IMG/VR virus record: IMGVR_UViG_3300031251_000001
Span: 150,230-214,229 of that record
Length of the DNA: 64,000 nt
Strand: one strand, 5' to 3'
A program made the position numbers and the translations under genes. The notes beneath the pieces were generated by a model. The model made no database searches and had not been told where the DNA came from. It saw only the letters and a program-made list of their open reading frames with translations. Positions 8,231 to 64,000 of the stretch are shown piece by piece. Each line of letters begins with the position of its first letter. The stretch's first letter is position 1.

Positions 8231-8243
8231 GTTGCCTCCAACC

Positions 8244-8259
8244 CAAAATACGTATTTTG
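8244..8259. promoter_or_regulatory. 16-bp palindrome CAAAATACGTATTTTG, copy 1
   Basis: Exact, intergenic. Confidence 0.85.
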
Positions 8260-8261
8260 GA

Positions 8262-14955: not shown

Positions 14956-14990
14956 AAAACGAAAGACCCCACGATGCAGGCCGTGGGGTC
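14956..14990 (-). terminator. intrinsic terminator
   Basis: GACCCCACG-loop-CGTGGGGTC followed by TTTCGTTTT. Confidence 0.75.
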
Positions 14991-15005
14991 AAAATACGTA
15001 TTTTG
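14990..15005. promoter_or_regulatory. 16-bp palindrome, copy 2
   Basis: Exact; abuts the terminator. Confidence 0.85.
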
Positions 15006-15295
15006 GATTCAGCGTGTCACTTAGGCTTGCCTGTTTGCGTACGAAAGAGGAAGCCGTCGTCCATTGAGACAGCGTCCGGGTATTCGTAGTCAAGGTTGGG
15101 CCAGTAGGTGACCGCCCAGCAGCGAAGCGACTTGTCACGGTAGATGCAATACTGCGGGAAGTCCTCATCGGCCATCTGGATAGAAAAGCCGATGTGGTCC
15201 GGACTGTCCTTGAACCATGTCAGGCGAAGCTGCGGTCGGGACAGCAAGAAGAGCAGCAAGGCAAAGACCAAGGCTTGGCGGATGATGATCATTGG

Positions 15296-21099: not shown

Positions 21100-21935
21100 G
21101 ACCCATCCTTGGGACTACGAGTGAGGCGGTTAGATGCTCTGTAGCATAGCGTCGGTCTCAGGTGTCGTACAGAGCAAGTGACGTGAAGGTTGGATGACAA
21201 GCTGCGTCACCGCTCGGGTGTGCTCCACCTGTAATTCTGGGCCGATCTGGGCATCCCGCCACTCATCGCCGATTCTCACAACTGGCACTAGATAAATGAA
21301 ACGATCATTAGCCTTGCGACAGCGGTAGGCGACGAGGCCCACCGCGTGGCTTTGATCATGGCCGAGCAGCACGATTTCATTCTGCCGCAAACGGCAGGCG
21401 ATAGAGTTCACGCTTTAAGTACCTCCATGACGACAACATCCCCTTTGCGGAGATACCCACGGTCAGGTAGGCCCTTGAGGTGCAGAATGCCGTTCAGCAT
21501 GTAAGTGCGGTTGATCACCGATTCAACGGACATCTCCCGGAGCGACGGAGAGAACATGAACGACCGCATCAAGAAGGTATGCCGCTCCTGGTTATAGTCG
21601 AGGATCTCGGCCGAGATGTAGTAGCTCATGAGTTCCACTGGTCTCCGTTTTCGGCCGCTGCCTTCAGCAAGCGGTCAACCGCATCGGGATAATCCTCGCA
21701 ATGCTGGCTGAAACCGACACCGTTCTCGCAGGTAGAATAGTGCCAGCGCTTGTCACCCTCATAGGAGATGGCCCGGTACTCCTTGACGCTAATGTTAACT
21801 TGAGCCTTGGTGAACTCTATCTGAACGAGTCTGGTTTTCATGGCGATCAAGCACGCTCTTCTGTCTGCCTCGACCACTCTGACTTCCAGACCACCAACAT
21901 CAATCGTCAGCGTTCGCATGTGTTCTCCTGGTGTG

Positions 21936-21951
21936 CAAAATACGTATTTTG
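21936..21951. promoter_or_regulatory. 16-bp palindrome, copy 3
   Basis: Exact, intergenic. Confidence 0.85.
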
Positions 21952-22179
21952 GAATCAGACAGCGACAGGCTTGGCGTCAACGAGCTTGCCGTCGATCCAG
22001 GCGTAGTTGACAGGGTCAGCACTCTCAGTGACGCGACGATCAGTGACCAGCACCCAACGGCACTCCAGGTCCTTGCCGTAGGCCTCAGCCTCCTCACGAG
22101 TGGCTAACCGCACAGCGTTGCTGTTCCACTCTTTACTGCGATCAGCGATGACTTCGACTTTGAAACTCATGGGTGTTCC

Positions 22180-24416: not shown

Positions 24417-25607
24417 TTACTTCCCTTTGTTGAGGATGACCATCACCGTCTTAATCGTCGTCCCCGACTCTTTGAACGCCGCGACAGGGAGTTCCTTAAT
24501 CTTGCCGTTCTTCTTGATCAGTTCGACCAGCTCGTTGTGCAGCGCTGTGCCACGGAACTGAACAGAGCCAGAGGCGATCGACACCAGCCTGCCGCCCGGT
24601 TTAAGCATCTTCCAGGCGTGCAGGATGTGCTTGATGTCCTGCATCTTAGTGAACGGCGGATTCATGACGATACGGTCGTACTGGGTGACCAGCGAGGGAC
24701 TGTTGAAGGTGAGGAAGTCTTGCTGCCAGACCGCGTAACTCTTCTCCACCAGGGCGTCGGCATCGTGCTTATCCAGCTCCACACAATGCACATCGCAACC
24801 CAGGTCTTTCAGCCTCTTGGCGATGCGACCATCGCCGGCTGACGGTTCCAGGCACAAGTGATACTTGCGTACCTGGGCCTCCTTCATCATCAAGTCGACG
24901 ATCTCGGGCGGTGTGTAGAACGATTGCTTGGTCTGCTGGATATTGATCGCCTTGCCGGTCTTAATCCCTTCCCGGAGCAAGTCGATGGCTTGGCGGTTGG
25001 GGAAGACGTGGGTGCCGAGGTTGGACTTCCATTTACCGTCATAACCCAGCAGGACCTTCTTGAAAGCAGCGTAGACCTTGGGGGCGAGTTGACCTTCCGG
25101 AAGCGTGACGGTCAGAGCGTCATCGTCGATAGTGCAATTGTTCAAGATCTCTTTGATCTCGTCGGGAATCGTGCCGCGTGCTGCTATGGCCATTGCTTCC
25201 TTTCTCTTTTGTTCTTTGACCTTGTCTATTGCTTCTGGAAGATACTCCTCCAACCGACAGCCCTCGTTGTGCTTGGTGCGGTAGTGCCGAAGGATGTCTA
25301 TCCAGTAGAGGTAAGACTTGTAATAACGAGTCTTGGTGTCGAGCAGTTTCTGCAACCTCGACTTCATGTACATCTCGGTGTTGTCGTCACCATATCGCTT
25401 GGCGGCAAACGTCGGACCCCGGTAGTCGCTGTAGATGTGTGAACGCAGCCTGACTGCGGCTTCCTTCTCGAACAGCTCCAACGTCCCGCGTACGTGCTGC
25501 AGGACGTTAGCCAGGCTGTGTGGGTTGTTGTCGATATAAAGCAACAACATATCAGTGTCGTGGCTCGGTCGCCACTCAGTGTTAATATCCAGTAGCTCAG
25601 GAAGCAT
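24417..25607 (-). CDS. class I SAM-dependent (N6-adenine DNA-type) methyltransferase
   Basis: QSFYTP, LEPSAGDG (motif I), YDRIVMNPPF (motif IV), FKESGT; start MLPELL after AGGAGA. Confidence 0.85.
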   Translation of the reverse strand: MLPELLDINTEWRPSHDTDMLLLYIDNNPHSLANVLQHVRGTLELFEKEAAVRLRSHIYSDYRGPTFAAKRYGDDNTEMYMKSRLQKLLDTKTRYYKSYLYWIDILRHYRTKHNEGCRLEEYLPEAIDKVKEQKRKEAMAIAARGTIPDEIKEILNNCTIDDDALTVTLPEGQLAPKVYAAFKKVLLGYDGKWKSNLGTHVFPNRQAIDLLREGIKTGKAINIQQTKQSFYTPPEIVDLMMKEAQVRKYHLCLEPSAGDGRIAKRLKDLGCDVHCVELDKHDADALVEKSYAVWQQDFLTFNSPSLVTQYDRIVMNPPFTKMQDIKHILHAWKMLKPGGRLVSIASGSVQFRGTALHNELVELIKKNGKIKELPVAAFKESGTTIKTVMVILNKGK

Positions 25608-26432
25608 GTGTCTCCTATCGGCGGTTGCTGTTGCGGCCGCTATAGCCGTTGGTTGGTACGGGGTGACCCTCCAGTGCACGAATCCTCGCTCTGCAATGAG
25701 TGATACTCCACATGAACTTATCCATGCGACGGCGGGCGCTGGCGGTGTAAATCTGAAACGTGCCGGGAGGGTTACGGTTCTTGGGGTCGTCCTCAATCTT
25801 CTTGACCTTGATCAGCAGCTGTCGCATCTCCTCACGCAACTGCGGTATGGTCTCTTCCGTGTCGGCGCTCATAGCTCGTCCTCGGTTAACACACCCTGGA
25901 ACATGAAGTAGATAACGCCCTTGCAGGTAGTCGAAGCAATGAACGTGGCGTCGGCTGGCAGGCAATCTGTCTCACCCGCCACGATGATGATCTTGAATCG
26001 CTTCTCGTTCAGGGCTTCCTTGGTGGGTTGAGCGTAGCGCCAGAAGAGAGTAGGGACATAACGATAGTGCTTGGTGCCACTGTCGTAGTATTTCTCCTTT
26101 CGCATCGTGAACCCCAGCAGCTGAGAGTCAGGAGGAATGCGAATGAAGCTCGTAGTGACCCATTGCCGTTCGATGGAGTGCAGCTCCGCAGAGCCGATTC
26201 GATGCGTGTCCATGGTCACTTGCCTTTCCGTTTCTTTTTGTTCTCGCTGAGGATGTCGTTCAACATGCACACCAGATCCATGTTGTCGGGGAATCGCTGA
26301 GTCATCTTGGTGTACTCGACGATTCGCCCACCCATCGTCGTCTCGATGAAGTCGTAATAGTAGGCCCCGTCCGTGACGTCAGGCTCCACGAACTTGTTGG
26401 TACGCATCCAGTTGTCGATCACCAGGGCCATG

Positions 26433-28423: not shown

Positions 28424-28495
28424 AGCCGGGGGCAAGATTTGAACTTACGACCTCGTGGTTATGAGCCACGCGAGCTACCACTGCTCCACCCCGGT
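28424..28495 (-). tRNA. tRNA-Met(CAT), initiator-like, no encoded CCA
   Basis: ACCGGGG TG GAGC AGTGGTA GCTC G CGTGG CTCATAA CCACG AGGTC GTAAG TTCAAAT CTTGC CCCCGGC T folds as a cloverleaf. Confidence 0.93.
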
Positions 28496-30204: not shown

Positions 30205-30446
30205 GGGTGATTCACCTTCAGGTTGTTGAACCAGGTCACGATGAGGACGAGCAGCCCCCACACGCCGATGACAAACAAGGTGATCCAGAGTGGACTCATG
30301 ACCCAGAGCCAAGACCAGTCGATGGCCTTGAACAGCTTGAGAGCGATGAACACCAGCTGTACGATGCCGATGATGATGGCAATGACCATGATCACGAGCG
30401 ATTCAAAGATTGCTTCACCGAAGGAGTTGAAGTCCATTCCATCCTC

Positions 30447-30462
30447 CAAAATACGTATTTTG
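30447..30462. promoter_or_regulatory. 16-bp palindrome, copy 4
   Basis: Exact; adjacent to the GGAGG RBS of the gene starting at 30437. Confidence 0.85.
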
Positions 30463-31295
30463 AAACCTACTTGGCCATCACCAGCAGCATGAACGGCCAG
30501 GAGACCATCCACAGAGTGAACCAGTAGGGCAACGTGAACCCAGGAGCACCTTTAGCGACCAGGATGATCAAGGCCAGGACGAATCCGATAGTCAGATAGC
30601 CCAGCACGATGCCGGCCAGCAACCTGCCGGCGCCTTTACAGATCTTCCAAAGTGTTCGCATGCGGTACTCCGGAGTTCCTTACTCCAGTGTACCCTGTCG
30701 GCGTCTCCGCACACTGCGGAGCGAACCCCGTGGCGGGAAGTACCCGATGTCCTTGACTTGACCGTTATGGAACACCACGCGGATGTTCTCAGGGCTGATG
30801 TGAGTGATGATCCCTTCGCGGCCGAGGAGTGACTTACCGCCGGCCAGGGTCTCACCAGTGACTTTAACTTTGGTTTGAGGTCGCATCGTGCTCTCGCTGT
30901 TTGTCCAATACTGTTGAGATATCGAGCAGGTACAGGCCGAACCAGATGGGCAGGCACACCGCCACTGCTATCGACAGGACAACAATAACACCTGCGAGAA
31001 CGGACATCAACCATTTACCGGCTGCTGACCAGGCAACGAGCCCAGCAGGGCTGCACAGCCAGAAGATCAAGATGGCGACCGGGGCGATGATGAAGCCGTA
31101 AGCGGTTGCCCGCGTAAGGTGAACGAGGAAGCGCATCACGAGGCCATCCTTTCCCGGAGAGCAGCCTCCTTGGAGCGAGGCCGCGGCCAACCATGACGGT
31201 AGAAATAATTGCAACACTTCCGGCAGTAGTAGCCCTGATGCTTACCTTTGTCATTGACGACAACCAGGACCCTGCTGTAGGGAGTCTCGCAGTCC

Positions 31296-32003: not shown

Positions 32004-32084
32004 GTTTGTCCTTGGGATGATCCCGTTTGACTTGGCCAGGAGTAACCCCGGCCGTCGACCACATACCAGTACCCGGTCGTGGTG
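32004..32084 (-). CRISPR. putative minimal-repeat array A (ACGRCCGGG, 25-nt period)
   Basis: ACGACCGGG and ACGGCCGGG 25 nt apart, plus a degenerate AAACGGG about 25 nt further. Confidence 0.45.
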
Positions 32085-32150
32085 CGTTGTGCCGCCGAGT
32101 ACCCACCAGGAGCACCCTAAGCAGCGGTAGGCCTACCGGTGGCCCCGTGA
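32085..32150 (-). ncRNA. 66-nt structured scaffold element, copy A
   Basis: TCACGGGGCCACCGGTAGGCCTACCGCTGCTTAGGGTGCTCCTGGTGGGTACTCGGCGGCACAACG. Confidence 0.8.
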
Positions 32151-32874: not shown

Positions 32875-32996
32875 GACATATCTCCATTTGACCCGGTACG
32901 CTTATCCTAACCCCGGCTCGTGTTGCTTAGCCATATCTAGGTCCCCCGGTGCGGCAATTCCTTCCTTCCGGATCCAATGCAAGCCCGGCGGCGATG
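32875..32996 (-). repeat. irregular CCGG(G) array B
   Basis: CCGG at 32893, 32913, 32946, 32968, 32985; spacing irregular. Confidence 0.3.
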
Positions 32997-33062
32997 CGTT
33001 GTGCCGGCGAGCGTCCACCAGGGACGCCCTAACCAGCTGTGGGCCTACCGGTGGCCCCGTGA
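32997..33062 (-). ncRNA. 66-nt scaffold element, copy B
   Basis: TCACGGGGCCACCGGTAGGCCCACAGCTGGTTAGGGCGTCCCTGGTGGACGCTCGCCGGCACAACG. Confidence 0.8.
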
Positions 33063-35889: not shown

Positions 35890-35903
35890 GCTTGCTCCTG
35901 GTT

Positions 35904-35919
35904 CAAAATACGTATTTTG
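35904..35919. promoter_or_regulatory. 16-bp palindrome, copy 5
   Basis: Exact; directly at the end of array C. Confidence 0.85.
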
Positions 35920-36079
35920 GGTTCGTGTCTCCGCCCCTGCTTCGTGCTGGTGGACTCCACCTGCTGTGACAAGCCCGACTTGACTCCCTGCTACGAGGTA
36001 GCCAGATCGGCTCACCTGTTGCGAGCATTGGCATCTCCGCCCCTGCCCGTGCGGGAAGAGCATCAACACCCTGCTCGCT
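35920..36079 (-). CRISPR. putative minimal-repeat array C ((RG)CAGG x6)
   Basis: Plus-strand cctg at 36070, 36042, 36015, 35987, 35960, 35936 (periods 28, 27, 28, 27, 24). Confidence 0.6.
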
Positions 36080-36145
36080 CGTTGTGCCAGCGACCCGCCA
36101 CCAGGGCGAACCTAACCAGCTGTAGGCCTAGCAGAGGCCCCGTGA
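36080..36145 (-). ncRNA. 66-nt scaffold element, copy C
   Basis: TCACGGGGCCTCTGCTAGGCCTACAGCTGGTTAGGTTCGCCCTGGTGGCGGGTCGCTGGCACAACG. Confidence 0.8.
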
Positions 36146-52439: not shown

Positions 52440-52530
52440 GTTTCCTTCGGGGCTACGGTGTCCTGACTCGTTGATGTGCGACGAGCCTTACCTGACTCGC
52501 CGCTATTGGGAACGAACTCCCTGACAGATG
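52440..52530 (-). CRISPR. putative minimal-repeat array D (CGAGTCAGG, 29-nt period)
   Basis: Plus-strand cctgac at 52462, 52491, 52520; 20-nt spacers. Confidence 0.65.
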
Positions 52531-52596
52531 CGTTGTGCCGGCGACCACCCACCAGGAGTGCCCTGACCGGCTGTAGGCGTGTCAGACGCCCCGTGA
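52531..52596 (-). ncRNA. 66-nt scaffold element, copy D
   Basis: TCACGGGGCGTCTGACACGCCTACAGCCGGTCAGGGCACTCCTGGTGGGTGGTCGCCGGCACAACG. Confidence 0.8.
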
Positions 52597-52913: not shown

Positions 52914-52938
52914 GCTTGCTTTCCGGGCGGGAGGGTTC

Positions 52939-52954
52939 CAAAATACGTATTTTG
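52939..52954. promoter_or_regulatory. 16-bp palindrome, copy 6
   Basis: Exact, intergenic. Confidence 0.85.
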
Positions 52955-53754
52955 CCGGGTGGCAGGGGACAAACTCCTGCCGTGACTATGACGTCACACC
53001 TTCGCACCAGGCAATTACCAGCCGCTGATTGAGGGTTGCATGACGAGCTTGTCGCCGATGCTGACCCTGCCTGGGCCAAACAGCTCCGGCTTGGGCTTGT
53101 CATTGATTGTGATGATGTGAGGCCAGATCTCCTCCAGGGAGACAGCCCTTTCCAGGGAATTGCGGTAGACCACATAAGCGATGTGGTTATCGCGGAGGTC
53201 ATTACGAGTGATGTAGATAGTGTTGTTCTTGGTAGCGGTGCACTCAGGTGGGGCTTCAGGTGCGATGAGGAAACCAGGTGAGCTGTTCTCAATTGATATC
53301 AGACGCAGTACGTTACTGTTGTTATCAAAGGTGTACGACTGCCCACCCGTTTTTACGATGAGCTTCCGGTCAAAACTATTCTGCTCAGTAAGTGCTTCCA
53401 GCTCCACCACAGCGTCTTGCCTCGCAATGAGGCTACCGAACGTCTCGATCCAGATCTTCATAGCTGTCTCCTTGGGTTAACCAACGCCGCCCAGCAACAC
53501 CTCGACCTCGAACAAGAACCGATCCATATCCATCTTGGGGAACATGGCCGAATCGGTGTAGGGTCCGGATCGTTTGATGCTTACACGGGGATCCTTGTTG
53601 AGTCCAGCCATGACGAACCTGGACTGGGACATCGGCCCCACCACAGTGTACCGAACGATTACCTCAGTACCAGAGGTCTTGCAGTTATCGAACTTGGGTG
53701 GGTCGTAAGCGGGGATGCGCATGTTAGTCTCCTAGTCGGGGATGTGGTGATCCG

Positions 53755-54286: not shown

Positions 54287-54323
54287 AAAACGAAAAGGCC
54301 CGCACCAGTGAGGATGCGGGCCT
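54287..54323 (-). terminator. intrinsic terminator
   Basis: AGGCCCGCA-loop-TGCGGGCCT followed by TTTCGTTTT. Confidence 0.8.
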
Positions 54324-54344: not shown

Positions 54345-57161
54345 CTAGCGGACGGGTGCTGTCGGCTGCTGACCGGTCAGGGCCTGGTTGATCTTGGCCG
54401 GAGCTTGAGCAGCACCAGCGTTCCCGAGGAAGTTGCGGGCAGCGGTCAGGAGCCCCATGCCTGCCATGCCGGCGATGCCACCGACCATCCCGCGACCCAG
54501 GCCACGCCCGAACGAGAAGTTGGGAGCTGCGGGCCGAGTCATCGACATGTTGGTGTTGAGGTAGGAGCGGGGCCGGGGAGCGGTGGGTTGACCATCCATG
54601 AGGCCGGCACGCTTGGGGACGCCTGCAGCAGGAGCAGCAGCCTGTTGATCAGATCCACCCAGGTACGACTTCATGGCCATGCCGCCACCCAGGAGACCAG
54701 CACTGGCAGTGCCGAGGCCTGCGACATTATCCCCCACAGTCGGAGCAGTGGGCGTGGGCTGGGAACCGAAGGCACGCTGAGCCGGAGCGGGAGCACGTGG
54801 GGCACTGGGCACCGAAGCACCGACCGGCACGTGTGACATGGAGGTGGGTAGTGCCTGGGCCATCGGTGCTGCGGGTCGAGGCACGATGGTCTGCTTGCTC
54901 ATGTTCTTCATGCCACGCATCATCTGCCCTGGGGCTTTGAGGATGCCACTGAGGATGCCAGCGTGTTTGGTGACGGGCTTATCGTCTTCCTCTTCCTTCT
55001 CGTGCTTGGGCTTGCTGCTGTCGGTCAGGCGATGCAGGCCGTAACCAGCCAAACCGCCAACCAGGCCACCACCGAGCATACCTAAGCCACGGTGGTCAGA
55101 CGGCGAGGCCATCAGGCCACCCATTTCACCCAAGGTACCACCAATGCCAGTAAAGATAGCTCCGCGTGAGCCACTGTTGACCTGGCGTGAATGTTCTTTC
55201 TTGTCGCCACCTGAGTCGGTAGCACCGACCACGCCTGGATTGATGACGCCAGCTGGCCCCATCATCAAGCGACGGATGATACGTGAGCTCTTGTCTCCCT
55301 GATCAACTTCCTTCTTGTTTCGCTGCCACGAGGGCTTACCACCGACCATGTACTGGCCGAACTTGTCGCCACCACGCATACCCAGTAGCCCACCAGTGAT
55401 ACCACCGACCGAAGCACCAATGCCGGCACCGGCTTCCTCGTGACCCAGTGCACGACCAATACCAGCGCCAGTTGCAGCTCCCAACCCGAGTCCGGTGGCA
55501 CCGCCCAAGCCGGCACCGAGGAGACCGTATCCAGTACGCTGCGTACCACGCACGGCGCCTTCGTAACGGTGACCCTTGGGTGAAGTGGCAGCACCAATGA
55601 TCGCAGGTAGACTAGCGAGGCTTAACCCACCCACCCCACCAGCGATACCGCCCGCTATGGCGGGATCGATAGCCCGCTTACTCCAGCGCACCTGTCCATC
55701 CACGGCCCCCTTCTTGCCTACAGGCGGTGCGGATTCCCACGGTGCCGGCGCAATGTTAGGCTTGGGCTGAACAGGAGCAATAGGGTAGTCAGCGCCACCG
55801 CCAACCCCAGAGGGTGGCGCGAATTGCATGAGATCATTAGGGTCTTTCGGCTTGCTGAACTGTCTCTGCAGGAAGTCACCCACAGACTTCTTGGGCTGGT
55901 CCCGCACAGTGTCCTTCAGTGATTTGAAGCCACTGGGTTGTGCGGCATAGTTACCCTTGATGGTTTCAGCCGCATGATGCACACCCTCATTCACCTCAGC
56001 GTCGTTCTGTTGTTGCTTACTCGTCAAATACCTGTGCAGCAAGTAGGTAGAACCAATACCAGCAACAGCACTAAGCACAGGGAGTGAACGACGAAGCAGA
56101 CCCGGCTTCTTGGGTTGTACGTCGACGGCCAACTTGCTCCAACGCACCTGTCCATCCACGGCTACTTTGTGTGTCAACGGATTACTCCCAATGGACGAGT
56201 CGTCAGCTTCGACTTCCTCGTGGTCTTCTGGATCAGTCTTGTCTTCACTCTGATTGGCGTCATCCAGCAGCTTGTTGAGTGGATGCGTCTTGGTGTCGGG
56301 CGTCATGGTATCGAGATGTTCACCGTGCCGCAGAGGCGAAGGCGGCGGTGGTGGAGGAGGCGGCACAGGTGGTGAACCAGGAGGCGGCGGATTGCCGTCA
56401 CCAGCGAAAGGCTGAGGAGGAGGCGGGCCGGCGGGTGCTCCACCCTGCTGCGAAGGATCGGTCTGTTGCCCAGGAGGGGGCGGTTGTCCACCGGGTGCGT
56501 TCGGTGCTCCTGGGGGGCCGGCGGGGGCACCGGGGGATGGAGGAGCACCGAACGCAGGTCCAGTGGGAAGTCCAGCTGCAGCGGCCTGCTGTCCTGGGGG
56601 CAGGTCACCTGACTGCGGTGGCTGCTGAATGGGGCCGGTCGGTGAGGCAGGTTGAGCTCCGACGTCACCAGCCGGCAGCGCTGCCCTCTTGCGTCGCGAG
56701 CGTGCTTGATGTGCCTCCACCCCGATCCGCGTGATGGGAATGCCGTTCAACTGGATCGGCGTGTACCGTAAGTCTCGGGCCGTGACAACCTTTTGCACCA
56801 AGTCGGCAGCACTGTGCACCGCCTCCTGGGACGAGGCGTCAACGTCTCCTATGGAGATGGCTTGTCCCGGCTGCTCCCCGGATGTCGTGCTGTCAGGGTC
56901 AGACCCGAGCAACAGGTTGCTGGTAACCCCCGCTCGCTTGTCCCGTCTGTGGGACCAAGTCGTGCGCAGAGTGTCAATGGCTCCCGTGAGCTCGGGAGTT
57001 AACCGTGGATTAGCCATAAATGATGCTGCCTTGCTCTGGGACCGTGCGAAGCGGTTCAGCTGTTCCTTCGTGGTACGAGCGGGTTTCGCAATGGACGACA
57101 ACTGTTTGTCGGCCTCAGAGCGTACCAGGTTTGGTGCGATTTGAGCGTCTGTGGATTGCAT
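54345..57161 (-). CDS. 938-aa low-complexity Pro/Gly-rich protein with glycine-zipper segments
   Basis: Poly-Pro tract, GxxxG helices, internal repeat AVDGQVRWSK x2. Confidence 0.75.
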   Translation of the reverse strand: MQSTDAQIAPNLVRSEADKQLSSIAKPARTTKEQLNRFARSQSKAASFMANPRLTPELTGAIDTLRTTWSHRRDKRAGVTSNLLLGSDPDSTTSGEQPGQAISIGDVDASSQEAVHSAADLVQKVVTARDLRYTPIQLNGIPITRIGVEAHQARSRRKRAALPAGDVGAQPASPTGPIQQPPQSGDLPPGQQAAAAGLPTGPAFGAPPSPGAPAGPPGAPNAPGGQPPPPGQQTDPSQQGGAPAGPPPPQPFAGDGNPPPPGSPPVPPPPPPPPSPLRHGEHLDTMTPDTKTHPLNKLLDDANQSEDKTDPEDHEEVEADDSSIGSNPLTHKVAVDGQVRWSKLAVDVQPKKPGLLRRSLPVLSAVAGIGSTYLLHRYLTSKQQQNDAEVNEGVHHAAETIKGNYAAQPSGFKSLKDTVRDQPKKSVGDFLQRQFSKPKDPNDLMQFAPPSGVGGGADYPIAPVQPKPNIAPAPWESAPPVGKKGAVDGQVRWSKRAIDPAIAGGIAGGVGGLSLASLPAIIGAATSPKGHRYEGAVRGTQRTGYGLLGAGLGGATGLGLGAATGAGIGRALGHEEAGAGIGASVGGITGGLLGMRGGDKFGQYMVGGKPSWQRNKKEVDQGDKSSRIIRRLMMGPAGVINPGVVGATDSGGDKKEHSRQVNSGSRGAIFTGIGGTLGEMGGLMASPSDHRGLGMLGGGLVGGLAGYGLHRLTDSSKPKHEKEEEDDKPVTKHAGILSGILKAPGQMMRGMKNMSKQTIVPRPAAPMAQALPTSMSHVPVGASVPSAPRAPAPAQRAFGSQPTPTAPTVGDNVAGLGTASAGLLGGGMAMKSYLGGSDQQAAAPAAGVPKRAGLMDGQPTAPRPRSYLNTNMSMTRPAAPNFSFGRGLGRGMVGGIAGMAGMGLLTAARNFLGNAGAAQAPAKINQALTGQQPTAPVR

Positions 57162-57167
57162 AGTGGT

Positions 57168-57176
57168 AATGTACCA
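57168..57176 (-). promoter_or_regulatory. extended -10 TGGTACATT, 6 nt before ATG (possibly leaderless)
   Basis: No SD sequence; spacing to ATG at 57161. Confidence 0.5.
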
Positions 57177-57200
57177 CAGACGCTGGGGTTGGTGGTGGGA

Positions 57201-57512
57201 TCAAAGCGAAGGCAGGCAAGCGTGGGCGACGTCGGAGGTGAAGAGCTCTCCTGGGCCGTTGCCTTCGGTGTCACGAGAAGCGTAGAGATGGACGTCGTTG
57301 TCGAGGATGATGACCAGAGGACGATTATCCCAGCGCATGTCGGTTGCCTCCTTCTTGGTCATGTACCTGACGTGCTTGATGGTGCGATCACGCAGGAGAT
57401 CAGTAGCAACAGCGGTCCAGTAGGTTTCACGCTGCTTAGCGTTGGAGAGGTCGTATTGCTTTCTGTGGTGAGTAACGATGGATGGCATGAGGTTGTTCCT
57501 GAGAGTTGACAT
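57201..57512 (-). CDS. hypothetical protein
   Basis: ASRDTEGNGPGELF motif; follows array E. Confidence 0.6.
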   Translation of the reverse strand: MSTLRNNLMPSIVTHHRKQYDLSNAKQRETYWTAVATDLLRDRTIKHVRYMTKKEATDMRWDNRPLVIILDNDVHLYASRDTEGNGPGELFTSDVAHACLPSL

Positions 57513-57642
57513 ACTGGTATTGCGTGCCCGTCACGACAGATCTGGCAAGGTGCCCGTCCGGAGGACGATACGGTACATGCCCGCCCTTGAAAGGTCGGGG
57601 CATGGACCCGTCCTCGGAGTGACGGCCAATACCGTCCCTGTT
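57513..57642 (-). CRISPR. putative minimal-repeat array E (GRCGGGCA, 26-27-nt period)
   Basis: Plus-strand cccg at 57527, 57553, 57580, 57607 and cctg at 57637. Confidence 0.6.
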
Positions 57643-57708
57643 CGTTGTGCCGACGCGTGCCCACCAGGAGCACGCTAATCAGCTGTAGGCCTGACGGAGG
57701 CCCCGTGT
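57643..57708 (-). ncRNA. 66-nt scaffold element, copy E
   Basis: ACACGGGGCCTCCGTCAGGCCTACAGCTGATTAGCGTGCTCCTGGTGGGCACGCGTCGGCACAACG. Confidence 0.8.
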
Positions 57709-58529
57709 GCTTGATTGTTAGAACCTTGGTCTAGGCAGTTCCTTTGATTCTTCCACAGTCGGCTCAGGTGTGGGTTGGTGCCGGGCCTCCAGGGCGGAAA
57801 TGCGACTTGATAGCGACTCATTCACGATCGCTTGCTCGGAGATCTTGTTCTCGATGCGGATGTGTTGAATGGTGTGAATGACCAGGTAACCCATGGCGAA
57901 CCAGAAGATGAAATCAAACATGTGTTCCTTAGTTGATACTGGGTTTACCTGCCACACGGCGTAACACCGTGGTCAGGGCCTCATTGGTGATGTCGGCTCG
58001 GTCGGGGTCAGTCACCTCGCGGCAACCATCCTCGACGATAACGATGTCATGCTCGCAATGGTCAGCGAGGAAGCGAAAGATCGGGGCAGTCTCGCCGCCA
58101 TCGCCCATGACCGAGAACTCGGCCCCGCTGATGTGCAGCAAGTAGGCCAGAGAATCCGACTCAGCCAGTACCCGACGCAGGAACTCTTCGCTCACGCGAC
58201 TGGACTGGGGCGAGTCGAGATTGCAGGTCTTGCAGCGGTAACTCATGTCGACAGACATAGTGACTCCTCACAGTTCGCCACGTGATTGCAACAGTTTGAT
58301 CATGGCGGGATGAATCCAGAACACCTTGTTGCATTGGCAGGTGATGGCGATCCGTGTACCTACGGGCAAATGGGCCAACTCGTCGTTGCCGCCACGATCA
58401 GTCTCCGCCTTGTCGATGGTAGTCATGCGGTGATCTGCCGTGCTGAGCGTACGACATAGGGAGTGCCACTGACTGCGGACATAGCCCATGAACTTGGTGT
58501 TCGATAGTGTTTCTTTCATCGAGTCTCCT

Positions 58530-58612
58530 TAATTAGCCTGTTCGCCATTTCCCATCCAGCAATCCGGTCAACTGGTCCCATCCGGATTCAGGTTATGCCA
58601 CTCCCACCCGAT
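58530..58612 (-). CRISPR. putative minimal-repeat array G (GGRTGGGA, 26-nt period)
   Basis: Plus-strand ccca at 58551, 58577, 58603; 18-nt spacers. Confidence 0.65.
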
Positions 58613-58678
58613 CGTTGTGTCAACGCCAATCCACCAGGGATGAGCTCATTGACGGTAGGCGTGATGGACGCCCCGTAG
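58613..58678 (-). ncRNA. 66-nt scaffold element, copy G
   Basis: CTACGGGGCGTCCATCACGCCTACCGTCAATGAGCTCATCCCTGGTGGATTGGCGTTGACACAACG. Confidence 0.8.
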
Positions 58679-58738
58679 CCGTGAGGCCTCATGCGGTGTA
58701 AGCTGATCGCAGGCAATAATGCCACCAGAGGACCTCGC

Positions 58739-60325
58739 ATGCTAGATCAGAAACGAGTTGTGCTACCAGGTAGCGACCGCAAACCCTTAGAGGGTGCCAC
58801 GGTTGCAGCCGGCCACCGTCATAGTGAAAGGTTTGAGGTCACCGTGCGTCTGCGACGCAAGGCACCAATCAAACCCGAAGGAGCCCAACACGAGGATGTC
58901 CTTCCCGCTGATCGCAAGTATATGACCTGTGATCAGTATCTTGCACAGCATGGTGCCAAGCAGGAAGATGTTGATTTGGTGACAGCGTTTGCCAAGTTGT
59001 ACGGTCTGACGGTAGTCGATGTCAGCCTGGCACGCCGTAGTGTGTTCTTGTCGGGTTGTACCGAGCAGTTTGAGAAGGCCTTCAGTACCACGATCGCTGA
59101 CATGGAGCACCCTGGTGGCGGTTATCGCGGCCGAACTGGTCCACTCACAATCCCCGAGAGCCTGTCAGGCATCGTGGAAGCTGTGTTGGGCATCGACAAC
59201 CGCAAGATCGCCAAGCCCCACTTCCAGATGGCTAAGAGGCTGCAGGGTGCGACACCACACGCCAGCCACTCTTCCTACAATCCCAACGATGTCGCCAAGG
59301 CGTACAACTTCCCCACCGGGGTAGATGGTACGGGACAGTGCATTGCCTTGATCGAGCTCGGTGGCGGTTATCGTCTGCCTGACATCACCGCCTACTTCAC
59401 CAAGCTGGGACTGAAGGTGCCCACCGTGAAGACCGTGCGCGTTGATGGCGGCACCAACTCACCGACCACCGCCGATGGCGCTGACGGTGAAGTGATGCTG
59501 GATATCGAAGTAGCGGCAGCAGTGGCACCAGGTGCCACCATTGTCGTCTACTTTGCTCCCAACACCGATAAGGGCTTCCTTGACGCGATCACCATGGCCG
59601 CTCACGACACGGTCAACAAGCCTTCGGTCATCTCCATCAGCTGGGGTGGACCGGAAGCACAGTGGACCGTGCAGGCTCGCGTCGCCATGGATCAGGCGTT
59701 CATCTCAGCCTCCGTGCTGGGTCTGACCATCTGTGTGGCTGGCGGCGACAATGGTTCGACCGATGGCATGACTGACGGCAAGAACCACGTGGACTTCCCC
59801 GGCTCGAGCCCACACGCTCTTTGCTGCGGCGGAACACGACTGGGAATCGGCAGCTCCGGGCAAATCAGCTCGGAATCTGTGTGGAACGATAATCCCACAC
59901 AGAGCGCCACCGGTGGCGGTATCAGTGATGCCTTCAACGTGCCGGTCTATCAGAAGTCCGCTAACATCCCTCCCTCGGCTAATCCCAACAAGAAGTCGGG
60001 ACGCGGATGTCCGGATGTGGCCGGCAATGCTGATCCTTCCTCGGGTTACAACGTCCGCGTGGACGGTGGAAACTATGTGATTGGCGGCACCAGTGCGGTT
60101 GCTCCGCTCTATGCCGGACTGGTAGCACTCTTAAACCAGAAGCTGGGACACCGTTGCGGCTACCTCCACCCGCTGCTGTATGGCAGCGTGCAGGGCAAGG
60201 GAGCCTTCAACGACATCACGTCTGGTAACAACGGTGCTTACCACGCCCAAAAGGGCTGGGATTGCTGCACAGGGCTGGGCACACCCAACGGGCAGGCCCT
60301 CTATATTGCCCTGGGCGGCAAATAG
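58739..60325 (+). CDS. S53 family peptidase (kumamolisin/sedolisin-like) with propeptide
   Basis: Triad motifs GEVMLDIE (ExxxD) and GGTSAVAP, oxyanion GDNG, SISWG, C-terminal GWDCCTGLGTP. Confidence 0.95.
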   Translation: MLDQKRVVLPGSDRKPLEGATVAAGHRHSERFEVTVRLRRKAPIKPEGAQHEDVLPADRKYMTCDQYLAQHGAKQEDVDLVTAFAKLYGLTVVDVSLARRSVFLSGCTEQFEKAFSTTIADMEHPGGGYRGRTGPLTIPESLSGIVEAVLGIDNRKIAKPHFQMAKRLQGATPHASHSSYNPNDVAKAYNFPTGVDGTGQCIALIELGGGYRLPDITAYFTKLGLKVPTVKTVRVDGGTNSPTTADGADGEVMLDIEVAAAVAPGATIVVYFAPNTDKGFLDAITMAAHDTVNKPSVISISWGGPEAQWTVQARVAMDQAFISASVLGLTICVAGGDNGSTDGMTDGKNHVDFPGSSPHALCCGGTRLGIGSSGQISSESVWNDNPTQSATGGGISDAFNVPVYQKSANIPPSANPNKKSGRGCPDVAGNADPSSGYNVRVDGGNYVIGGTSAVAPLYAGLVALLNQKLGHRCGYLHPLLYGSVQGKGAFNDITSGNNGAYHAQKGWDCCTGLGTPNGQALYIALGGK

Positions 60326-60327
60326 TC

Positions 60328-60343
60328 CAAAATACGTATTTTG
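60328..60343. promoter_or_regulatory. 16-bp palindrome, copy 7 (20 bp perfect here)
   Basis: TCCAAAATACGTATTTTGGA between convergent stop codons. Confidence 0.85.
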
Positions 60344-60349
60344 GATGGA

Positions 60350-63529: not shown

Positions 63530-63597
63530 AAAAACTCCTTATTGGGAAGCGAAGACTCACCCCATCACGAAGAAAGCCACTGCACTATGCAGCGGCT

Positions 63598-63663
63598 CGT
63601 TGTACCGGCGAGTGTCCACCAGGGACACCCTAACCAGTGGTAGGCGGGATGGACGCCCCTTAG
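63598..63663 (-). ncRNA. 66-nt scaffold element, copy F (directly upstream of the Cas12f-like gene)
   Basis: CTAAGGGGCGTCCATCCCGCCTACCACTGGTTAGGGTGTCCCTGGTGGACACTCGCCGGTACAACG. Confidence 0.8.
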
Positions 63664-63932
63664 TTGATTGGCTGACCTGTGGGACCGAGGATGCTGCCTG
63701 GTTTGCGGACTTCCAGTTCAGCGGGATCAGGTGGCAGCTCAGGGACATTATCGAACAGACACAGATAGCTGGTGGGATGCTTGCCATTGATCAAGGGCAG
63801 CTTGTCCAGGTCGGTTTGCAGCTGGGCTTCAGGGTTAGGTATCCGTGCGACGGTGATTTTCTGCGGGATGACGTAGCCACCCATGGTGCAGGCCTGCCAG
63901 ATGCGATCATCGTGGTCAAAGACTTGCTCCAC
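63660..63932 (-). CDS. hypothetical protein
   Basis: 90-aa ORF whose stop codon overlaps scaffold copy F. Confidence 0.5.
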   Translation of the reverse strand: MEQVFDHDDRIWQACTMGGYVIPQKITVARIPNPEAQLQTDLDKLPLINGKHPTSYLCLFDNVPELPPDPAELEVRKPGSILGPTGQPIN

Positions 63933-64000
63933 GGAGGAGTATTCATCGAGATCCTTCTGTCGTGCGTCGCAGAAGTAGTAAGCAACGACATCCCAGTAGA

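Follow-up and report, generated by a model that had tools for sequence, protein, structure and literature searches.

A structured leader RNA predicted to be self-addressed in an uncultivated jumbo phage

What is the short, regularly repeated element on the minus strand in front of a small open reading frame of an uncultivated 214-kb soil phage, and does it carry its information in the spacers, as an array would, or elsewhere? We analyzed a 64,000-nucleotide stretch (the window) comprising positions 150,230 to 214,229, the last 64 kb, of the 214,229-bp IMG/VR virus record IMGVR_UViG_3300031251_000001, which derives from a rhizosphere metagenome. An earlier note, made from the sequence alone, had described the locus at 58530–58678, cassette G, as the copy with the most divergent scaffold of a repeated family, carrying an exact 26-nt array at the head of a transcription unit. 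This observation was confirmed, and the sequence given in the note is exact. Read on the minus strand, a 67-nt scaffold is followed by GGGTGGGA, GGATGGGA and GGATGGGA, spaced exactly 26 and 26 nt. The two-unit pattern with up to 2 mismatches is expected 0.19 times per window and occurs only here, as an overlapping triple. Two features had not been noted: the Shine-Dalgarno (SD) sequence TAAGGAGA of the downstream ORF lies exactly 26 nt after the third repeat, and the repeats are complementary to the loop of the first scaffold hairpin, P1.

As an initial step, the relationship of cassette G to other parts of the genome was examined. A BLAST search of the region against the window revealed three weak sister copies of the 67-nt part, and an alignment of the four copies folded into two hairpins with compensatory changes. 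A covariance model built from this alignment (R1) identified seven copies in the window and ten in the genome, all on the minus strand and scoring 61–92 bits, whereas the next best hit in the window scored 13.9 bits. A second model built from all ten copies (R2) recovered the same ten and nothing weaker at E ≤ 1. The scaffold of cassette G scored 86.6 bits with R1 and 78.8 bits with R2. Sister cassettes are named below by the 5' end of their scaffold. In the ten-sequence alignment, 96% of pair cells are standard pairs and 10 of 20 pairs show changes on both sides; none of 500 shuffles and no slid register came close. Several pairs are invariant or frequent G.U, so the fold exists on this strand only, which is the sense strand of the flanking genes. 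Cassette G has the most divergent sequence, with 23 differences from the consensus and a mean pairwise identity of 0.65, but it keeps every helix.

The 5-nt loop of P1 differs between cassettes, and in every case the short motif repeated downstream is the reverse complement of the cassette's own loop (CCAUC with GAUGG in cassette G). Seven different loops occur in the ten cassettes: those in the window are listed in Table 1, and the three copies outside the window carry CCGCA and CCGAC. Counting sites that pair over all five positions with at most one G.U yielded 30 own-loop sites in 1146 nt of leader, compared with 4.0 ± 1.7 (maximum 10) in 3772 derangements in which loops were exchanged between cassettes. 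In 8 of 10 cassettes, a site is found within 12 nt of the 3' end of the scaffold, lying 2–5 nt behind it; cassette 147088 has a 4-bp version at this position, and cassette 63662 has no proximal site. Off-consensus sites often keep the pairing through G.U, such as GGUGG in cassette G, GCCGG opposite CCGGU, GGCAG and GGCGG, so the pairing is at the RNA level. Successive sites are mostly 24–29 nt apart, although the arrays of cassettes 33061 and 147088 are less regular, and the periodicity may partly reflect origin by tandem duplication of units. The arrays always lie between the scaffold and the SD, and in the eight cassettes without the palindrome described below, the last site starts 21–44 nt before the ATG. 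This covariation between loop and array cannot be produced by a constant protein-binding motif and is the strongest evidence obtained here, although it comes from paralogs in a single genome that are not independent lineages.

Table 1 Features of cassette G, its sister cassettes in the window and other elements mentioned in the text
Coordinates (window unless marked genome)	Strand	Feature	Details
58611–58677	-	Cassette G scaffold, 67 nt	P1 hairpin, UAC junction, P2/P3 hairpin with a bulged A and an invariant CCUGGUGG apex (58631–58638), A-rich tail ACAACGAU (58611–58618); covariance model hits, structure and covariation
58663–58667	-	P1 loop "address" CCAUC	P1 stem 58668–58673 paired with 58657–58662; loop complementary to the downstream GAUGG/GGUGG sites
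58602–58609	-	Acceptor site 1, GGGUGGGA	Core GGUGG pairs with the loop through one G.U; 2 nt behind the scaffold; proposed pseudoknot partner
58576–58583	-	Acceptor site 2, GGAUGGGA	Core GAUGG, a perfect complement of the loop
58550–58557	-	Acceptor site 3, GGAUGGGA	
58524–58531	-	Shine-Dalgarno region UAAGGAGA	In the fourth 26-nt slot
58268–58519	-	Downstream 83-aa ORF	No family match; first gene of a unit that appears to run through cassette 57707 and the 938-aa ORF to a terminator near 54296
58691–60325	+	Divergent S53-like 544-aa ORF	Alternative start at 58739; Pro-kumamolisin activation domain, E 2.9e-13
63596–63662	-	Sister scaffold, loop CCAUC (same address as G)	Followed by a terminator-like hairpin and one GAUGG site
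57641–57707	-	Sister scaffold, loop CCGUC	Five GACGG/GGCGG sites at +4, 28, 55, 82 and 108
52529–52595	-	Sister scaffold, loop CUGAC	Three GUCAG sites 29 nt apart
36078–36144	-	Sister scaffold, loop CUGCU	Five to six AGCAG-type sites, then the 18-bp palindrome at 35903–35920
32995–33061	-	Sister scaffold, loop CCGGU	Four ACCGG/GCCGG sites
32083–32149	-	Sister scaffold, loop CCGGU	Three sites; upstream of a PAP2-family ORF
63576–63593	-	Intrinsic-terminator-like hairpin with T-tract	Starts 3 nt after scaffold 63662; its 3' strand contains a 4-bp partial acceptor
genome 5167–5190	-	Intrinsic-terminator-like hairpin with T-tract	Directly before scaffold 5162 (genome)
8243–8260, 14989–15006, 21935–21952, 30446–30463, 35903–35920, 52938–52955, 60327–60344		18-bp perfect palindrome	Copies in the window, of 22 in the genome
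52602–52913	-	HNH endonuclease ORF, 103 aa	Ends immediately upstream of cassette 52595
28424–28495	-	tRNA gene	61 bits; the only Rfam hit in the window
24417–25796	-	459-aa ORF	Matches phage DNA methyltransferase families
genome 122962–125232		C5-methylase ORF	Two genes upstream of cassette 122685, with a 100-aa ORF between
genome 102635–107659, 96994–100695 and 27098–27259		Fused beta/beta'-N RNA polymerase subunit (1674 aa), beta'-C protein (1233 aa) and sigma-70 region 2 ORF	Outside the window
genome 1–126 and 214103–214228 (window 63874–63999)		126-bp identical overlap of the record ends	

The interpretation offered in the earlier note was only partly supported. It held that, unlike the other copies, cassette G has no minus-strand gene directly upstream because a divergent S53 gene lies there, and that it therefore needs its own promoter or antisense read-through. 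The absence of an upstream minus-strand ORF and the presence of the divergent S53-like gene were confirmed. However, cassette G is not the only cassette without a co-transcribed upstream gene, because the copy at genome 5162 sits directly behind an intrinsic terminator. The inference about a promoter or read-through is reasonable but rests on sequence alone. No sigma-70-like promoter scored in 57400–58900, and the only public runs containing this DNA are four DNA metagenomes, with no RNA run among them, whose contigs add no informative variants in cassette G. The phage has a second intergenic signal, the 18-bp palindrome CCAAAATACGTATTTTGG, most copies of which lie between a stop codon and the next SD of minus-strand genes. 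At least two copies (genome 15540 and 84134) directly follow an intrinsic terminator, and in two cassettes the palindrome sits one period after the last acceptor; it is probably a phage promoter or operator. No copy lies upstream of cassette G and no degenerate copy lies nearby; the nearest, at 60327–60344 between the convergent S53-like and 616-aa genes, could in principle send antisense transcripts through the S53-like gene into cassette G. A perfect 11-bp hairpin just 3' of this copy, inside the 3' end of the 616-aa gene, may be a bidirectional stop signal.

The repeat/spacer vocabulary of the earlier note and its proposed spacer search were not supported. The 18-nt spacers have no match in the phage, in GenBank phages or elsewhere, and the information lies in the short repeats, which match the cassette's own hairpin loop. 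A CRISPR-like or other guide array is therefore very unlikely, its only support being the repeat-spacer appearance and the constant period in cassette G: the repeats are 5–8 nt and cassette-specific rather than constant and of roughly 20 nt or more, the spacers vary in length between cassettes (24–29 nt periods), and no cas-like gene or cas domain was found beside any copy.

To assess whether the element is already known, we compared it with RNA families and sequence collections. The only Rfam 15 hit at gathering threshold in the whole window is the tRNA, and a permissive scan of 57450–58760 returned one chance hit at E 5.4. No similar DNA was found in GenBank phages. Three conserved-motif pattern scans, covering IMG/VR (twice), JGI metagenomes and GTDB genomes, returned only the phage's own contig and chance hits that fail the covariance model. 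The fused beta/beta' polymerase led to more than 180 related IMG/VR records carrying the same fusion at 35–51% identity; of these, eighty whole records were scanned with R1 or R2, and the only hits scored 17.7 and 16.8 bits, the first lying in coding sequence. In a 182-kb relative inspected for analogous dispersed repeats, only coding-type repeats were seen. The 938-aa neighbor has no relatives at all, and literature searches found nothing with this design. The element thus appears to be a previously undescribed structured RNA.

We tentatively favor, at less than even confidence, the view that cassette G is one of ten copies of a cis-encoded, address-specific riboregulatory module carried inside minus-strand mRNAs of this phage. 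What the sequences establish is the conserved 67-nt fold, the variable P1 loop, its complementarity to acceptor motifs repeated about every 26 nt between the scaffold and the next ribosome-binding site, and the proximity of the closest acceptor; transcription of the locus, formation of a pseudoknot, occupancy of the array and any effect on the downstream ORF are inferred. In this view, the loop and the proximal acceptor would close an H-type pseudoknot, in which the UAC junction, the P2/P3 hairpin and the A-rich tail with its invariant ACAAC form the long third loop crossing the sequence-conserved G-C-rich P1 stem. The further acceptors, evenly spaced up to the SD, would take additional scaffold copies (from sibling transcripts, from a processed stable fragment, or from the neighboring cassette with the same address) or let the loop re-latch after it has been stripped, so that the leader would be occupied up to the edge of the 30S landing zone. 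Expression of the downstream ORF (translation, mRNA fate, or both) would then depend on scaffold dose in a gene-specific way, with the diversity of addresses keeping the cassettes orthogonal. For cassette G, the module would sit at or near the 5' end of its transcript. Multivalent acceptors that stop one slot before the SD are most simply explained by several bulky scaffold molecules docking side by side, and the flanking genes (ThyX, PAP2, hypotheticals) are unrelated to each other, so the module is generic rather than gene-specific.

Several points weigh against this model. One loop can pair with only one site at a time, so the reiteration is explained only by assuming trans copies or re-latching, and a seed of 5–6 bp is short for action in trans. 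In the two cassettes with a promoter-like palindrome between the array and the SD, the genes can be expressed without the module. The terminators that touch two copies point towards transcription rather than translation. Furthermore, the minimum-energy fold of the whole cassette G leader does not recover the scaffold (z = -1.1), although that of cassette 57707 does. Neighboring cassettes share addresses (63662 with G, and 33061 with 32149), which could reflect local duplication or cross-talk. If the pairing does control expression, the cassettes would form a compact set of orthogonal riboregulators and a window on how a giant phage with its own polymerase organizes gene expression. Multi-copy structured RNAs in phages have repeatedly turned out to be new regulatory or catalytic principles, and here the genome supplies a natural compensatory-mutation series of seven addresses, each with its own matching array, which is unusually direct evidence for a specific RNA-RNA contact and makes the element readily testable by address swaps. 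A bolder possibility, which we consider unlikely but not excluded, is a new class of programmable, self-addressed RNA device in which a compact scaffold docks, one molecule per roughly 26-nt slot, on the acceptor array of its own leader, giving each phage gene a private, dose-dependent (timer-like) switch; alternatively, the scaffold would be a small guide-directed ribozyme or a polymerase-riding element that reads the acceptors in turn. In any of these forms, it would be an RNA-only regulatory principle not described in phages or bacteria.

Among the alternatives, the least improbable, though still unlikely, is a put/EAR-like element that docks as nascent RNA on the host or phage-encoded polymerase and changes pausing or termination across the untranslated leader and beyond, with acceptors pairing with the loop as they leave the exit channel. 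HK022 putRNA is about 70 nt, has two stem-loops, acts in cis without protein and lies in phage early operons (PMC9378689), and the scaffold shares this size and two-hairpin shape, is embedded in phage operons and likewise has no dedicated adjacent protein gene. Put RNA is further characterized by its stem I triplex, binding to the beta' zinc-binding domain and suppression of downstream terminators. The phage encodes its own polymerase and a sigma factor, terminator-like hairpins adjoin scaffolds 63662 and 5162 (only suggestive evidence), and evenly spaced sites suit a process that moves along the RNA. The invariant apex, together with an invariant bulged A and a U.G pair, looks like a docking surface for a protein, the polymerase or another RNA. 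However, no sequence relation to put is detectable, there being no model of put against which to test one; nothing forces the loop to leave site 1 for site 2; and no consistent terminator lies downstream of the cassettes. Put occurs twice per phage rather than ten times and has neither a variable loop nor a downstream array complementary to it. Nearly as likely is a processing or stability element, an intergenic punctuation mark in polycistronic mRNA whose compact pseudoknot would be an RNase recognition site or an exonuclease roadblock, in the manner of T7 RNase III sites, REP elements or xrRNAs, or, in its most novel form, a small self-cleaving or guide-directed ribozyme cutting at the acceptors. 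There are ten intergenic copies, seven of which start 0–13 nt after the upstream stop codon; the inferred H-type topology with an A-rich crossing strand and a sequence-conserved G-C stem is typical of mechanically resistant folds; 27 invariant positions are spread over loops, junctions and tail, more than a simple protein hairpin needs; and every acceptor ends in GG, with most followed by a further G, which could define a cleavage context. On the other hand, the phage has no RNase III gene, no Rfam ribozyme or xrRNA model matches, a roadblock would need only the proximal site, and cassette G and copy 5162 have no upstream message to protect.

A DNA-level role, as iterons plus an inverted copy for a DNA-binding protein, an integron attC-like recombination site or a Chi-like signal, is highly unlikely. 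At the DNA level, loop complementarity equals an inverted repeat of the iterated motif, and the elements bound small accessory genes. The apical sequence CCTGGTGG, invariant in all scaffolds, is 7 of 8 identical to the E. coli Chi site and occurs 29 times on the minus strand against 8 on the plus strand, which is probably coincidence plus coding bias. Seven different motifs would, however, need seven different proteins, and the G.U pairs of the helices become A-C mismatches on the other strand, while site variants preserve G.U. An attC site is a single imperfect palindrome joining inverse-core and core sites, whereas the element is two independent hairpins whose ends pair by at most 3–4 bp in 4 of 10 copies; moreover, the genome has no tyrosine recombinase (PF00589), and no recombination junction was seen in metagenome variants over 57100–59300. 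A Csr/Rsm-type sponge, with many copies of one constant GGA motif in hairpin loops, is not supported because the motif differs between cassettes (GAUGG, GACGG, GUCAG, AGCAG, ACCGG, GUCGG, GCGG) and tracks the cassette's own loop. Likewise, type III antitoxin (ToxI-like) arrays consist of tandem full-length repeats of about 34–40 nt next to an endoribonuclease toxin gene, whereas only 5–8 nt per unit is conserved here and no toxin-like neighbor was found. A G-quadruplex was rejected because cassette 52595 has too few G-runs, an anti-SD mimic because the loops do not consistently resemble CCUCC, and readthrough or frameshift stimulation because the period is not a multiple of 3 and cassette G has no upstream ORF. 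No gene for ribosomal protein S21 was found in the phage.

Other systems offer partial analogies. The T4 gene 32 translational operator has a 5' pseudoknot followed by a leader with reiterated short motifs running up to the ribosome-binding site, an architecture similar to that proposed here. In T4, the repeats are bound cooperatively by one protein, the product of the regulated gene, and are unrelated to the pseudoknot pairing; here, the repeats are the pairing partner and differ from gene to gene, and the ten downstream proteins are unrelated to one another. T7 RNase III processing sites and REP elements are likewise about ten conserved structured elements in intergenic positions of polycistronic phage mRNA close behind stop codons, but are single long hairpins without a pseudoknot partner or array. 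In H-type pseudoknots with an embedded hairpin, such as the preQ1-II riboswitch, a hairpin loop pairs with a 3' strand near the SD and an extra hairpin sits in the long connecting loop; in our case, the pairing sequence varies freely and is reiterated, and ten copies precede unrelated genes, which argues against a ligand sensor. PeSL regulatory cassettes of T4-type phages and start-associated sequences of mycobacteriophages are also multi-copy intergenic cassettes between small accessory genes in a plastic part of a large phage genome, but they are promoter/terminator or DNA motifs of constant sequence, without a covarying loop and array.

Besides the fused beta/beta' polymerase, a second beta' fragment and the sigma-70-family ORF, the phage encodes DNA polymerase A, a DnaB-like helicase, a terminase and a baseplate protein, whereas most other proteins have no family match. 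Eight of the ten cassettes lie in one arc of about 37 kb made up of mostly small ORFs without family matches; the genes downstream of the cassettes include ThyX and a PAP2 phosphatase, and no paralogy was found among the flanking proteins. Although the record is listed as linear, the overlap of its ends indicates that the genome is probably closed or circularly permuted, in which case cassettes 63662 and genome 5162 are only about 5.4 kb apart.
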